From NCBI RefSeq assembly GCF_000007005.1, contig NC_002754.1: a stretch of 64,000 nt of DNA; one strand, given 5' to 3'. The notes beneath the pieces are model-generated. The model made no database searches. It saw nothing but the letters and a program-made list of their open reading frames with translations, and was not told where the DNA came from. The position numbers were made by a program, and so were the translations under genes. Positions 9,475-31,118 of the stretch are shown here, in pieces (positions within the stretch are counted from its first letter, which is position 1; each line of letters opens with the position of its first letter). Origin of the DNA: Saccharolobus solfataricus P2 (GTDB taxonomy: Archaea; Thermoproteota; Thermoprotei_A; Sulfolobales; Sulfolobaceae).

Positions 9475-9990
9475 TTAGATCGATAATGTTGAGGTAATAT
9501 AGTAAAATATGGAATATCCGAATAATCTTACTAGAACATCTCTATTATCTAAAAAGCAGAGTCCAACATTTACTCTGCCTTTATCTATGCTTACTATTGG
9601 TTGGTCATTTACTTTCAATAGCGGTACACCTTTAATACCTTTACTTATATATCCCTTTATTTTGCGTCCAACAGCTTGTTTAAAAGTGAACGCTGTAAGA
9701 AGGGTAGGTTCTAATATTTCTATCTCTCCTTCAATATAGTTTTCACACTTAAGGAAAGCAGTGTTATGAAAAACTTCTCGAGTTAGTATTATACCTTCTA
9801 TCCAGCTCAACTTTTTAATCTCGTGTGTGCACTGGTCGCTAACTAATGAGAGTGGAGGGAAAGTAACTATTTTTCCATTTACGTTCAAAGTAGCTGGATA
9901 TACTAATATTATGTCTCCTTCTTTTATTTCCCTTGCTTCATTAGGTCTGCATATTTTACTGCTAACGTCTACGTAAGGCATATTAAGCAA
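9475..9990 (-). CDS. Hypothetical protein
   Basis: 171-aa ORF filling the gap; no recognised motif. Confidence 0.6.
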   Translation of the reverse strand: MLNMPYVDVSSKICRPNEAREIKEGDIILVYPATLNVNGKIVTFPPLSLVSDQCTHEIKKLSWIEGIILTREVFHNTAFLKCENYIEGEIEILEPTLLTAFTFKQAVGRKIKGYISKGIKGVPLLKVNDQPIVSIDKGRVNVGLCFLDNRDVLVRLFGYSIFYYITSTLSI

Positions 9991-10017
9991 TATTAAGAGG
10001 TATACTATAAATAAAAA

Positions 10018-10073
10018 TTAAAGATGTATGCACTTGTAAGGGCTGAGCAGTTGATGAATAACCAGGCTGATGA
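10018..10073 (+). ncRNA. Box C/D guide sRNA candidate (guides match tRNA-Val-type anticodon loop and D-loop)
   Basis: Variant C box AAGATGT 10021-27, D' CTGA 10043-46, C' TTGATGA 10051-57, D CTGA 10067-70; spacing typical of archaeal ~55-nt sRNAs. Confidence 0.7.
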
Positions 10074-10354
10074 ATATGAGATGGCTTAAAAAGAGGGAGG
10101 TAATAATATATTTCCTTCTTTTCAAGAAATTTAGATATGAGAAATTTAATATAGGTGATGCTTTTTCTGTTTTAATGCCCTATTTTTCTAAAAAAGTTGC
10201 AAGTAATAGTATAAATTATATGACTAAAATAGGTTTAGTAACTAAACTGAGTAATGTTGAGTATAGGCTTAATCCCTTTGATGATTTTGTTCTTTCCTTC
10301 TTGGCAAAACCTTATTTGGAAAGAAGAACTACTCTTCGTCGTAGAATTCAATAG
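10070..10354 (+). CDS. Small hypothetical protein, possible winged-helix
   Basis: 94-aa ORF; its first ATG overlaps the sRNA D box, second ATG at 10076. Confidence 0.55.
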   Translation: MNMRWLKKREVIIYFLLFKKFRYEKFNIGDAFSVLMPYFSKKVASNSINYMTKIGLVTKLSNVEYRLNPFDDFVLSFLAKPYLERRTTLRRRIQ

Positions 10355-10730: not shown

Positions 10731-11024
10731 TTACTTTTTCCTTATGGCAATCTCTATTGTTGAAACTCTCGATTGCCTTCCGTCTTGGCTCGTTACTACT
10801 TGGCTCCCTACTCTAATTTCTTTAATCTCTATCTTGTCTGGTAAGAATCTGTTCCTTACTATTTCTACAGTATCTACGGCTTTGCTAATAGCTCTTCCTC
10901 TAGCTTTGATTACTATTTCGCTTACTCCTTGGTTTAATAGAGTTAATGCTGCTAAAACATAGTTCATTACTGGTTTCTTTCCTATTAAGACTACATTACT
11001 TGGAGTTGGGGTTCCGCTGCTCAT
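10731..11024 (-). CDS. alba1: Chromatin protein Alba1 (Sso10b)
   Basis: [26 protein letters not shown] and [11 protein letters not shown] 11024 is preferred over GTG 11033 because a GGTGG SD precedes it. Confidence 0.97.
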
Positions 11025-11143
11025 CTTTTCCACCTTTTTGGTCTCAAATAGACATTCATATAAAGCTAAAAAAGTTAACCGAATAGAGTAACACTTCGAT
11101 AACTCTTTTAAAAGATCTTACCATCATAAAGTTTTTTCTAGCT

Positions 11144-14100
11144 ATGATTAATGTAATGTATAAAAATTCCTGCCCTAACTGTGGTGGGGACATTTCTGGT
11201 GACAGATTGCTGAATGGTCTGCCATGTGAGGCTTGTTTACCTTATATTAACGGAATAGATGATGTAGACCATATTTCAAAGGTAAAAACGTTATACAATA
11301 TTTTACTTAATAACGATAAAATTAAAAATTATTGGAATTTATATTATAACATCACTACATTTGAAACTGTCTTTAAATATTTTAGAGATAAAACTGGATA
11401 TGAACCTTGGTCTCTCCAGAAACTATGGTTAAGAAGGCTTGCGAGTAATCAGAGTTTCACTATGTCAGCTCCAACTGGATTGGGGAAGACAACCACATTG
11501 ATGACCTATTCTGTCTTTATTGGCCAAGATGTAGTATATATCGTTCCCACAAAGTCCTTAATGGAACAAGTATGTAAAAGATTAGAGAAATTAGGTGCTC
11601 AAGTATCTTGTGGTAAAATTGATCAAAAGAAAGTAAGCGTAATAACAATAAGTTACCTAAATAAGAACGCGGACTCGATAGTAAGCCTTAAGCCAAACTT
11701 TGTCGTAATAGATGATGCAGATGCCGTAATAAAGAGCGGTAAAACAACTGATAGACTTGTTAGCTTATTGGGGATTCCGAAGGACGTTTATGAGAGTGCG
11801 ATTCAACTAATTAGGCTAAGGAATAAATACTATTTCTCTAACGAATACACGGAAGAAGTTAAAGAAAAAATTAGAGAATTGGAGCTTAAGATAGCAGAAT
11901 TTAAGGATAAAATTTCACAGCTAGTTATAGCTAGTGCTACAATACGACCTAAAGGCATTAAGCAAAAAGCTTTAAGGTTATTAACAGGTTTTGAACCTTC
12001 TTCTATTCAGTTATATGCTAGGAATATAATTGATGCTTATACTGAAAATCTAGATCTTTCAATAGTCAAGGAATTAGGAAGTGGTGGGTTAATTCTAGTT
12101 TCGAAAGAATATGGTAGGTCCAAATTAAATGAAATAAAGAAATACGTTGAGGACTTAGGTTTTAACGCTAAATTAGCAATAAGTGGAAGGAAATTCCTCG
12201 ACGATTTCTCTCAAGGTAAAGTAGATATTCTAGTAGGTTCTGCGTCTTATTATGGTGTTGCCGTTAGAGGAATTGATGAACCTAAAAGATTAAAATACGT
12301 CATATATTATGGAGTACCTAAAATAAGAGCTAAGCTTTTTGACGCTTTATCTAATCCATTTACATTACTCAGAGTAGGTAAATTAATTGGAATCGATTTT
12401 TCAAAGTTACAGAATAAGATTTTAATTCTGAATCCTTCTGAAGTTCAATTATTGAAGTTTTCCATAATAAAAGGAGAAAGTATAAACTACCATAAGTTAG
12501 AACAATTGAGGCAAGAATTGCTATATTATATGTCATTAGTTAAAGATAAGTTGAAGGAGAAAGTCGAGGATACTTTAATTTCAGATAGTTTTGTAATTAC
12601 CAAGCAAAATGGAAATTATTATATCGTCTATCCCGATATGATAACATATTTGCAAGGCTCTGGGAGGGCAAGCAGACTTTACAATGGTGGATTGACTCTT
12701 GGATTTTCAATAATTCTAGTAGATGATAGACACATCTTTGAAATATTGGAGAAGAAAATGCAAAAATTGTTTCCTAACACTACCTTTACTTCATTATCTA
12801 ATACAAATTTATCTGAAATAAAAATTAAACTGGAAGACTCTAGAAAAGAAGAAGGGAATAGGGTCCATTTTAACATATCAACTGGTTTACTTATAGTAGA
12901 GTCTCCAACAAAAGCAAAGACTATAGCTAAAATGTTTAGCAGACCCTCGGTTAGGATAAGAAATAAAGTACCAGTATACGAAACCATTATAGTAGATGGT
13001 AATCAAATATACGTGTTAGATATAGTAGCTTCAAAAGGCCATATCGTGGATCTAACCTTAGAAGATATAGGATATTATGGGATAAAAGTAGAAGATGATG
13101 GAACTATAAAGCCATATTACGACTTAATAAAGAAATGCCTCGACTGTAATAAGATATTTTCTAGTGCTTCAGATAAATGTCCATACTGTGGTTCTGCAAA
13201 TCTTCAATCAGCTCAAACTACCATTAACTTACTCAGGGAGTTAGCGTTATCAGTAGATAAAGTGTTTATAGCTTCTGACCCAGATACTGAAGGGGAGAAG
13301 ATAGCATATGATCTGGCTTCATTCTTGTCTCCATATAATTCCAACGTGTATAGAGTAGTATATCACGAAATTACTAAGAAGGCAATATTAGAGGCATTGA
13401 GGAATCCCAAAAAGATTAATACAAATCTAGTAATGAGTCAGATAGTTAGAAGGATAGAAGATAGATGGATTGGCTTCACGTTAAGTAACTTACTAAAAAC
13501 GAAGTTTAATGGACATAATCATGGTGCGGGTAGGGTACAAACTCCAGTTTTAGGTTGGATAGTGAATAAAACGATAAAGTATAAGAGTGCAATGGGTCAC
13601 GTGGTTTATATTGACATCGCGGGATACTCCATTAAAAAATATTTTAGTGAAAAAAGGAAGGTGGAAGAGTATATAAATAACTTACAAGTAGCTAGAATTG
13701 AAAAAATCTCTGAAGAGAAAATACTATTATCTCCATTACCTCCCTTTACTACAGACACCTTACTTATTGAGGCTAACATGAAATATAAACTACCAGCTAA
13801 TCTTGTAATGAAGATTGCTCAAGATCTATTTGAGGCTGGCCTAATAACATATCATAGAACTGATAGTACTCATATTTCCTCTGTAGGTATAGAAATAGCA
13901 AAGGAGTATCTTCAAAAGCAAGCGCTCATTAAAGAGTTTGTTCCTAGATCATGGGAATCATCGGAGGAAGGTGCTCATGAGGCAATAAGACCAACTAGAG
14001 CTATAGACGTTAACGAGTTAATTCAAGAAATAGAGGAGAATCCTTATAAGTATTCGATAAGGTTTAGTAAATTACACTTATTAATTTACGACTTAATATT

Positions 14101-14644
14101 CAAGCGATTTATAGCTAGTCAGATGTCCCATGCAGTTGGTACAAAAAGTAGGTATTTGATAAAGTTAGGCAAGGACGATAATGTCGATGTAGAATTGTTA
14201 AGTAATGCTGAAGGCGGATTTATTAAGGTATATCCAGTTAAGGTGTATAATTTACCTGTAGGTGAGATTCAACCTAAAGTTAATATTACTAAGGGGTCAA
14301 GTGAACAATTGCTAAGTTACTCTGATGTGATATCATTAATGAAATCTAAGGGAATTGGAAGGCCTAGTACATATGCAAAAACTATAGAAAATCTAATGAA
14401 GCATGGATATATAGTTAGCAGTAAAAGAAAGTCATATCTAATAGCAACAAACAGAGGTATCTCAGTATATCAATTTCTAAGCTCCAAATTCTACGATCTA
14501 GTTTCCGAAAGTACCACATCTAGATTAATGACAAAATTGGACGACATTGCACTAAGCAAGTTGAATGCTTCTACAGTGTTATTAGAAATATTCAGCGAGA
14601 TATCTACCTTAGTAAACCCTCTTAAGTCTGAGCAAAATGTATGA
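11144..14644 (+). CDS. rgy: Reverse gyrase (TopR2 type, 1166 aa)
   Basis: N-terminal CPNCGG Zn finger, SF2-like [13 protein letters not shown], topoisomerase [29 protein letters not shown] (catalytic Tyr) and GIGRPSTYA. Confidence 0.96.
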
Positions 14645-14922: not shown

Positions 14923-14975
14923 GTTCAGTAACACGGGCCCTTATCATCAATCAAACTGAAGGGCGTCATCACCAA
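14923..14975 (-). ncRNA. Box C/D guide sRNA
   Basis: Minus strand reads GTGATGA-cgcccttcagt-TTGA-TTGATGA-taagggcccgtgtta-CTGA (C 14972-66, D' 14954-51, C' 14950-44, D 14928-25). Confidence 0.88.
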
Positions 14976-23550: not shown

Positions 23551-23583
23551 ACTTTAATATCTAGTTTTATATAAAATAAAATT

Positions 23584-23637
23584 GCTGTGAAGACCTAGCT
23601 AGGTCTGAAGAGTGATGAGGGGCCAAAGCTCGGAGCG
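23584..23637 (+). ncRNA. Box C/D guide sRNA, sR14-like (tRNA-Gln(UUG) U34 guide)
   Basis: GTGAAGA 23587-93, D' CTGA 23605-08, C' GTGATGA 23612-18, guide ggggccaaagct, variant D CGGA 23631-34. Resembles Sulfolobus sR14 as recalled. Confidence 0.85.
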
Positions 23638-28344: not shown

Positions 28345-29521
<1,177 letters not shown>

Positions 29522-31018: not shown

Positions 31019-31118
31019 GCGGGGGTGCCCGAGCTGGTCAAAGGGGGCGGACTCAAGACCCCTTAAGTGAGAGATCCGCTGGCGAAGGCCTTCGCGGGTT
31101 CAAATCCCGTCCCCCGCA
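31019..31118 (+). tRNA. tRNA-Leu(CAA) with 16-nt intron at canonical 37/38 (31058-31073); CCA not encoded
   Basis: Acceptor stem GCGGGGG/CCCCCGC, anticodon stem GCGGA/TCCGC, CAA at 31054-56, long variable arm, GGTTCAAATCC T-loop. Bulge-helix-bulge: CTCA/TGAG helix with two AGA bulges. Confidence 0.96.

Follow-up and report, generated by a model that had tools for sequence, protein, structure and literature searches.

We analysed a 64-kb stretch of the Saccharolobus solfataricus P2 genome (contig NC_002754.1; hereafter the window), in which the sequence can be read as a four-box C/D element at positions 10018–10073 on the plus strand, lying between a divergent conserved gene and a conserved open reading frame (ORF) for a protein of 92 amino acids. 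By sequence and gene order, this element is the S. solfataricus orthologue of Sac-sR124, a published C/D box small RNA (sRNA) of S. acidocaldarius, and is a genuine C/D box sRNA. The Sac-sR124 family has no Rfam entry and the S. solfataricus copy adds a member to it; this member was found in none of the resources searched, and older lists (Omer 2000, Tang 2005, Zago 2005) may name it. The plus strand at 10016–10078 is AAUUAAAGAUGUAUGCACUUGUAAGGGCUGAGCAGUUGAUGAAUAACCAGGCUGAUGAAUAUG, and the features of the locus are as follows, with lengths in nucleotides (nt) or base pairs (bp).

9475..9981, minus strand: divergent conserved gene of 168 amino acids with no assigned function (ORF list, homologues and synteny); shares a 40-bp intergenic space with the sRNA promoter
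9987..9998, plus strand: candidate TATA-like promoter element AATATTAAG, about 27 nt 5' of the probable sRNA 5' end; the AT-rich block is kept in alignments
10016..10076, plus strand: putative mature sRNA of about 59–61 nt, its ends placed through the alignment by analogy with Sac-sR124
10021..10027, plus strand: variant C box AAGAUGU, GAUG core retained
10028..10042, plus strand: C–D' spacer of 15 nt, ending in CUUGUAAGGG
10033–10042, plus strand: working D' guide CUUGUAAGGG; its +5 nucleotide is A10038
10043..10046, plus strand: D' box CUGA, invariant in seven orthologues
10047..10050, plus strand: D'–C' linker GCAG, 4 nt, varying in sequence and length among orthologues
10051..10057, plus strand: C' box UUGAUGA, followed on the same strand by the string AUAACCAGGCUGAUGA; UGAUGA (10052–10057) is invariant in seven orthologues
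10058..10069, plus strand: D guide of 12 nt, AUAACCAGGCUG; its +5 nucleotide is G10065 and UAAC[C/U]AGGCU is conserved
10059–10066, plus strand: UAACCAGG, followed by CUGAUGA at 10067–10073
10070..10073, plus strand: D box AUGA, its register taken from comparison; overlaps CUGA at 10067–10070
10076..10354, plus strand: conserved ORF of 92 amino acids with the start MRWLKK; predicted winged helix with a long C-terminal helix

Architecture and conservation of the element

Syntenic loci were reached through homologues of the divergent 168-amino-acid gene and gave a seven-way alignment of Sulfolobaceae genomes or contigs: S. solfataricus, S. islandicus, Sulfolobus sp. E5-1-F, S. tengchongensis, S. 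acidocaldarius and two hot-spring contigs (L237 and L238). All seven share the gene order XPB helicase, 168-amino-acid gene, element, 92-amino-acid gene, 106-amino-acid gene, Alba and reverse gyrase. Invariant across the alignment are CU.GUAAGG, the D' box CUGA, UGAUGA of the C' box, UAAC.AGGCU, the UGA at 10071–10073 and the ORF start ATGAG.TGG. The C boxes are AGGAUGU, AUGAUGU, AAGAUGU or AAGAUGA, with GUGAUAG in S. acidocaldarius and AUGAUAU in L238, the latter two lying nearer the D' box; the C–D' spacer is longest in Saccharolobus and L237 (15 nt) and shorter in L238 (13 nt) and S. acidocaldarius (12 nt). At C-box position 6 and D-box position 1 the Saccharolobus type carries G and A, where the S. 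acidocaldarius type has A and U. A first-pass annotation of the sequence had described the C box as a variant that keeps the core of a kink-turn (K-turn), and this stood: the S. solfataricus box agrees with RUGAUGA at five of seven positions and holds GAUG, and a GA-containing C box is present in all seven orthologues.

The syntenic copy in S. acidocaldarius is identical to Sac-sR124, an RNA of 55–56 nt (ends AAUGUAGUGAUAGG to UUGAUUA) represented by 5320 reads (Dennis et al., 2015, PMC4644070) and listed in the S. acidocaldarius sRNome at complement(1131215..1131269), 55 nt (Daume et al., 2017, PMC5539422). In L7Ae RNA immunoprecipitation sequencing (RIP-seq) it rose from 1123 normalised reads in the control to 61308 and 42669, an enrichment of approximately 40-fold (log2 fold change 5.35, q = 7e-32), and it was grouped with 61 other C/D sRNAs of that species. 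The dual-guide C/D box sRNA that had been proposed at this position is therefore upheld by an orthologue that is both expressed and bound by L7Ae.

A grammar fitted to the S. solfataricus layout (GA[UC]G, 11–17 nt, CUGA, 2–9 nt, UGAUGA, 8–13 nt, UGA) matched once on the two strands of the window, against a mean of 0.007 over 300 dinucleotide shuffles; two of the 300 gave any match. A search of Rfam returned no family for the element, either at the gathering threshold or at a permissive E-value: the best score there was 19.3 bits (snoR118, 44-bit cut-off) and the archaeal sR families reached at most 13.4 bits, against cut-offs of 37–50. The same database does recognise sR14, sR5 and one transfer RNA (tRNA) elsewhere in the window. 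The predicted fold of the sRNA is less structured than that of shuffled sequences (z = +1.85), as expected for open, accessible guides.

The D box was placed by comparison. The first-pass annotation had called the D', C' and D boxes canonical, the last as CUGA at 10067–10070; invariance supports the D' and C' boxes, but this D box is not conserved: L237 has CUAA there, and S. acidocaldarius and L238 have CUGU. A D box with GA is shared by all seven at just one place, where it reads AUGA in the Saccharolobus group and L237, and UUGA in S. acidocaldarius and L238. As UGA at 10071–10073 is invariant while CUGA varies, we place the D box at AUGA, 10070–10073. This shift of 3 nt downstream gives a D guide of canonical length (12 nt) with C17 of tRNA-Val at +5, in place of an abnormal 9-nt spacer with +5 on G19. 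The published target of the S. acidocaldarius RNA is a C, which points to the same register, since only the UUGA register provides a G at guide position +5. The case shows how a box assignment of canonical appearance, made from one sequence, can be corrected by comparison.

Two further sRNA matches were noted in the window: Rfam sR5 at 14924–14975 (minus strand), which resembles Sac-sR123, and sR14 at 23583–23636 (plus strand). The order sR124, sR123-like and sR14, with spacings of about 4.9 and 13.6 kb, is the same as in S. acidocaldarius; the ribosomal RNA (rRNA) operon that comes next in that species is absent from this window.

Predicted targets of the two guides

The D' guide had been assigned to U34 of tRNA-Val(UAC), with the target tRNAs lying outside the window. 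The latter is correct, as tRNA scans found no tRNA-Val in the 64 kb, and the complement of the guide, CCCUUACAAG, has no other occurrence in the window. U34 is probably the target: it is the best-supported candidate, the guide fits the anticodon loops of relatives with U34 at +5, and for S. solfataricus itself we infer the target from them. No rRNA target was listed for this guide by Dennis et al. (2015, PMC4644070), whose entry reads 'Sac sR124: 23S C834 | NP'; the column order of that table was established with Sac-sR125, in which an A has to be the target of the D guide and a G that of the D' guide.

A genome collection was scanned for tRNAs combining CCUGGUUA, CCUUACR and a T-loop, with the T-loop GTTCRAATC and the D-loop CCTGGTTA required. 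This gave 102 loci, 12 of them from Sulfolobales (Acidianus, Metallosphaera, Ca. Aramenus, HS-7 and metagenome-assembled genomes). Sulfolobales tRNA-Val(UAC) reads ...UAGCCUGGUUAGGACG..GCCCUUAC[A/G]AGGC..., the anticodon arm being CCCUUAC[A/G]AGG in 12 genomes. A structure-neutral scan of metagenomes found the same kind of tRNA-Val(UAC) on at least dozens of hot-spring contigs, some with introns after position 37; among the matches listed, no contig was assignable to Saccharolobus, and the structure-neutral pattern had no match in viral contigs. A full-text literature search for tRNA, 23S or guide sequences returned nothing relevant, and the paper on S. solfataricus circular RNAs likewise held nothing.

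Against these tRNAs the D' guides of all the orthologues pair over 9–11 bp with U34 at +5. Saccharolobus guides form 10 bp with the A37 form of the loop (CCCUUACAAG, C30–G39); the L238 guide forms 10 bp shifted one position toward G40, that of L237 forms 9–10 bp, and that of S. acidocaldarius, GUCUCGUAAGGU, forms 11 bp with the G37 form and 6 bp with the A37 form. The guide core GUAAGG, invariant in the seven orthologues, pairs exactly with C31–C36, which are fixed in any tRNA-Val(UAC), and the variable guide positions face tRNA positions 30, 37 and 40, themselves variable among Sulfolobales. If the assignment is right, tRNA-Val(UAC) of S. solfataricus carries CCUUACAAG, with CCCUUACAAG at positions 30–39, and that of S. 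acidocaldarius carries CCUUACGAG, with CCUUACGAGG at 31–40 and G37.

Searches of phage and plasmid records for tRNA-Val(UAC) yielded a single site, on the S. tengchongensis plasmid pRT2 (NZ_CP146017.1; locus L239, 1501–1545), where the 3' 42 nt of the tRNA, from C32 to the 3' end, lie just upstream of an integrase gene. Given its place beside a site-specific integrase, the site (CUUACGAGGCGAAGGUCCUGGGUUCAAAUCCCAGCGGGCCCA) is likely attP. Its sequence, CUUACGAGGCGAAGG..., indicates that such a tRNA-Val(UAC) exists in the S. tengchongensis clade, and the S. tengchongensis guide would pair with this G37 form over 10 bp, one of them G–U.

Several observations were made on tRNA loci in passing. A slot adjacent to a DUF2122 gene holds tRNA-Val(GAC) in S. 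solfataricus (L113, 8492–8566) and S. tengchongensis (L115, 14394–14468), and tRNA-Val(UAC) in Acidianus, Metallosphaera, Aramenus and several metagenome contigs (loci L074, L086, L023, L103, L198 and L229); the slot of tRNA-Val(CAC) in S. acidocaldarius (L114, 13597–13673) is likewise occupied by tRNA-Val(UAC) in contig L164. Anticodons thus appear, from the sequences compared, to switch at orthologous tRNA-Val loci. A fragment of an integrase of the SSV1 ORF D-335 type (L113, 8462–8761) abuts the 3' end of the S. solfataricus tRNA-Val(GAC) and suggests the remnant of an integrated element. Metagenome contig L178 has tRNA-Val(UAC) between TFS and Cren7; in the window, Cren7 is encoded at 28345–28527 (plus strand) with no tRNA upstream of it. 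The one tRNA recognised by Rfam in the window (31019–31118, plus strand; 44.6 bits, missed by ARAGORN) contains an intron and has a long variable arm, and by eye its anticodon is CAA (Leu).

The D guide had been matched to the D-loop of a tRNA-Val, and part of this claim survives. The D-loop sequence CCUGGUUA is present in tRNA-Val(GAC) of S. solfataricus (L113, 8492–8566), where AUAACCAGGCUG pairs over 11 bp with U13–A21 (UAGCCUGGUUA) through ten Watson–Crick pairs and one G–U pair; the register and the +5 nucleotide had to be changed, the latter to C17, and the published 23S rRNA target C834 had not been considered. The same D-arm occurs in all the Sulfolobales tRNA-Val(UAC) genes found, which means that both guides could act on one tRNA. 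Position 17 of S. acidocaldarius tRNAs is reported to carry a methyl group, 'most probably a 2'-O-methyl', and several such methylations are without an assigned guide or enzyme; the table of that study places the position-17 methyl in tRNA-Val(GAC) and tRNA-Ala, within a set that excluded tRNA-Val(UAC) (Wolff et al., 2020, PMC7668247).

The alternative that stands up best is that the D guide really acts on 23S rRNA alone, at the hairpin that corresponds to the one with C834 in S. acidocaldarius, and that its match to the tRNA D-loop reflects a coincidental similarity. C834 is the target listed by Dennis et al. (2015), and the S. acidocaldarius D guide (UUAACUAGGCUG) forms a perfect 10-bp Watson–Crick duplex with the hairpin CAGCCUAGUU of its own 23S rRNA (at GCAGCCUAGUUUCUAGGC), placing +5 at C834, while on tRNA D-arms of its own type it needs three or four G–U pairs. 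The C/U difference between the two types of guide would be accounted for if a variable rRNA hairpin had undergone a compensated change; were the 23S reading true, the S. solfataricus hairpin homologous to GCAGCCUAGUUUCUAGGC would carry the compensating CAGCCUGGUU (GCAGCCUGGUU...). Against this, the Saccharolobus guide pairs over just 6 bp with the S. acidocaldarius 23S rRNA and would require that putative A-to-G change, whereas with the tRNA D-arm the guides of Saccharolobus and L237 pair perfectly or nearly so, a G-to-A change in L237 converting a G–U pair to A–U; and the position-17 methylation exists and still wants a guide or enzyme. We regard an exclusive 23S target as a serious contender, at rather less than even chances. 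The two targets are not mutually exclusive, and the D guide would act on C17 of tRNA-Val carrying UAGCCUGGUUA, on the 23S hairpin equivalent to C834, or on both.

The downstream gene and the proposed mechanism

For the protein encoded immediately downstream, seven orthologues share 54–92% identity, and it has no Pfam or NCBIfam match. Its AlphaFold model (predicted local distance difference test score, pLDDT, 86) is a winged helix with a long C-terminal helix, for which Foldseek gave weak MarR, HxlR and Sso10a-2 matches (best E 0.009, template modelling score about 0.5). The gene sits in a cluster of chromatin and topology genes, with Alba at 10731–11033 (minus strand) and reverse gyrase at 11144–14644 (plus strand).

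On the other side, in the window segment 9981–10020, the 168-amino-acid gene and the sRNA appear to start about 37 bp apart, and the TATA-like block of each lies nearer the start of the other; from this spacing the segment would form a compact bidirectional promoter region. The distance of the plus-strand block from the sRNA agrees with that usual between TATA element and start site in archaea. Inspection of the sequence between the sRNA and the start codon revealed no AT-rich TATA-like element, and the simplest reading is therefore that the ORF would be co-transcribed from the sRNA promoter.

The D box had also been said to share its A with the ATG of this ORF. ATG codons occur at 10070 and 10076, both in frame with the ORF (94 or 92 amino acids), and the statement holds for the former, which is not conserved; the conserved start is ATG 10076. 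The 94-amino-acid product has identical counterparts in LT549890 and further S. solfataricus assemblies. In L237 an in-frame stop comes after the D-box ATG, and 8 extra nt lie between that ATG and the conserved one.

This closeness makes a cis effect of the sRNA on the downstream gene plausible, by analogy with known cases, and raises the possibility that the element is mainly an L7Ae-binding K-turn leader that controls translation of the winged-helix gene, like the leaders of l7ae and saci_1468, with no important guide function. The D box ends 2 nt from the conserved start codon in six of the seven orthologues; in S. acidocaldarius, K-turns in 5' leaders allow L7Ae to repress translation, and the RIP peak that covers Sac-sR124 is 144 nt wide, reaching beyond the sRNA (Daume et al., 2017, PMC5539422); and sRNA genes that overlap the 5' end of an ORF, a described minority (7%), reduce the expression of the gene that follows (Tripp et al., 2017, as presented in Breuer et al., 2021, PMC7994747). 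However, both guides are conserved across genera and the linker is not, which would be needless for a pure protein-binding site; S. acidocaldarius accumulates a discrete RNA of 55–56 nt classed with 61 other C/D sRNAs; and the L237 lineage tolerates 8 extra nt between D box and start codon. Guiding and a cis effect can also coexist, and we consider it unlikely that the element is chiefly a cis-acting leader.

The preferred reading is instead that of a guide RNA made together with its downstream gene. Transcription would proceed rightward from the promoter in the 40-bp divergent intergenic region, the sRNA lying foremost on a transcript that continues into the 92-amino-acid winged-helix gene. 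L7Ae, which binds the orthologue, would occupy the terminal C/D K-turn (AAGAUGU with AUGA) and the internal C'/D' motif, and Nop5 and fibrillarin would complete the ribonucleoprotein (RNP) as expected for the family; a protected core of about 60 nt would then be trimmed out of the transcript, in keeping with the view that such sRNAs mature by RNP protection and trimming, as set out in Breuer et al. (2021, PMC7994747). The D' guide CUUGUAAGGG, paired to C30–G39 of tRNA-Val(UAC), would direct 2'-O-methylation of the wobble U34, and the D guide AUAACCAGGCUG would set at +5 a C, that of C17 in the tRNA-Val D-loop and/or the C834 equivalent in 23S rRNA. With just 2 nt between the D box and the conserved start codon, translation of the ORF would be expected to face competition from assembly of the RNP or from trimming of the 3' end.

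Taken whole, with orthology to Sac-sR124, co-transcription with the ORF and guiding to U34 and C17 or 23S rRNA, we hold this explanation to be probable. Several points count against it. The 15-nt C–D' spacer is non-canonical, and so is the G–A juxtaposition of C-box position 6 with D-box position 1; longer spacers are known from recognised sRNAs of Sulfolobus, Sac-sR126 among them (Daume et al., 2017, PMC5539422). In Saccharolobus the string CUGAUGA offers two overlapping registers, inseparable by sequence alone, and CUGA may be used there as the D box. The evidence for expression and L7Ae binding comes solely from the S. acidocaldarius orthologue, the D' and 23S targets are read from sequences of relatives in place of those of S. 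solfataricus, and the evidence on position 17 derives in part from a machine-read supplementary table. The S. acidocaldarius guide is predicted to require G37 in its tRNA-Val(UAC), given the 6 bp formed with A37. None of the 102 scan matches came from Saccharolobus or Sulfolobus sensu stricto; this lends no support and is uninformative, because many Sulfolobales-type tRNA-Val(UAC) genes have GTTCAAGTC or the T-loop GUUCAAGUC, which the pattern excluded.

Finally, the 10-mer complementary to the D' guide is also found in S. solfataricus RNase P RNA, which might then be the target of this guide in place of tRNA-Val(UAC). The RNase P RNAs of S. solfataricus (L113, 11025–11328) and S. tengchongensis (L115, 10957–11264) contain CCCUUACAAG, a perfect 10-bp match, in a largely unpaired junction before P10/11, and RNase P RNA is itself a partner of L7Ae. 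The RNA of S. acidocaldarius (L114, 10951–11258), however, reads GCCUCAUGGGAG there and its guide pairs over just 3 bp, so that the match fails to follow the guide across genera as the tRNA-Val(UAC) loop does; we find this target very improbable. RNase P RNA was rejected as a conserved D' target, as S. acidocaldarius lacks the site, and we treat the match as lineage-specific or fortuitous. The view that box-like words fell together by chance in AT-rich promoter DNA, and that no RNA is made from them, could draw on the two mismatches of the C box to RUGAUGA, the frequency of UGA and AUG words near gene starts and the want of a matching Rfam family, but it is given almost no weight, in view of one grammar match where 0.007 were expected, conservation in seven lineages and an expressed, L7Ae-bound orthologue in S. 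acidocaldarius that already contradicts it.

A bolder proposal, which we offer with considerable doubt, is that sR124 is a two-site modifier of tRNA-Val, producing 2'-O-methylated U34 (Um34) on tRNA-Val(UAC) and 2'-O-methylated C17 (Cm17) on tRNA-Val and perhaps other AGCCUGG tRNAs, with its K-turn tying assembly of the RNP to the output of an Sso10a-like winged-helix protein encoded beside Alba. The predictions that follow from the analysis are Um34 on tRNA-Val(UAC), G37 in the tRNA-Val(UAC) of S. acidocaldarius, and sR124 as the source of the unassigned position-17 methylation of Sulfolobus tRNAs. The result leaves the current view of C/D sRNA function unchanged.

Comparison with known systems

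The closest relative is Sac-sR124 itself, which occupies the same slot in the same strand relation, shares the box order and the cores GUAAGG and UAAC.AGGCU, and adjoins the same downstream gene. The S. solfataricus RNA differs in that its C box lies 3 nt farther from the D' box (15- versus 12-nt spacer), its D' guide is CUUGUAAGGG instead of CUCGUAAGGU, its D guide has CCAGG in place of CUAGG, and the ambiguous CUGAUGA is CUGUUGA in S. acidocaldarius.

In function, a parallel is the Sulfolobus sRNA for tRNA-Gln(UUG) (Ziesche et al., 2004, as cited in Wolff et al., 2020, PMC7668247), a single sRNA that likewise serves the wobble position and the D-loop of the same tRNA. According to that citation it targets U34 and G18, and both methylations are observed in S. 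acidocaldarius; here the tRNA is Val, the sites are U34 and C17 and are predicted, with rRNA as a rival target of the D guide. Pyrobaculum sR45 (C34 of tRNA-Val), sR27 (U34 of tRNA-Gln) and sR46 (U34 of tRNA-Thr) also direct an anticodon-loop guide at position 34 at +5 (Lui et al., 2018, PMC6009581). They have a single tRNA target each, belong to a different archaeal order and, for valine, concern the CAC and not the UAC isoacceptor; the likeness is one of target position.

In its position by a start codon, the element resembles the leaders of l7ae, saci_1468 and nop5, in which a K-turn by the start codon is bound by L7Ae in S. acidocaldarius (Daume et al., 2017, PMC5539422). Each of those leaders has a single K-turn, lacks guides and is not processed to a stable sRNA, in contrast to the complete four-box guide RNA seen here. 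The element fits more closely with the C/D sRNAs that overlap the 5' end of an ORF, which have the start codon in or just after the D box and are released from a longer transcript under protection of the RNP (Tripp et al., 2017, as reported in Breuer et al., 2021, PMC7994747). Set against that class, as it is outlined there, the S. solfataricus sRNA shows nothing distinctive and is one more member of the 7%, here conserved across genera; its arrangement against an ORF start is of a known, uncommon type.

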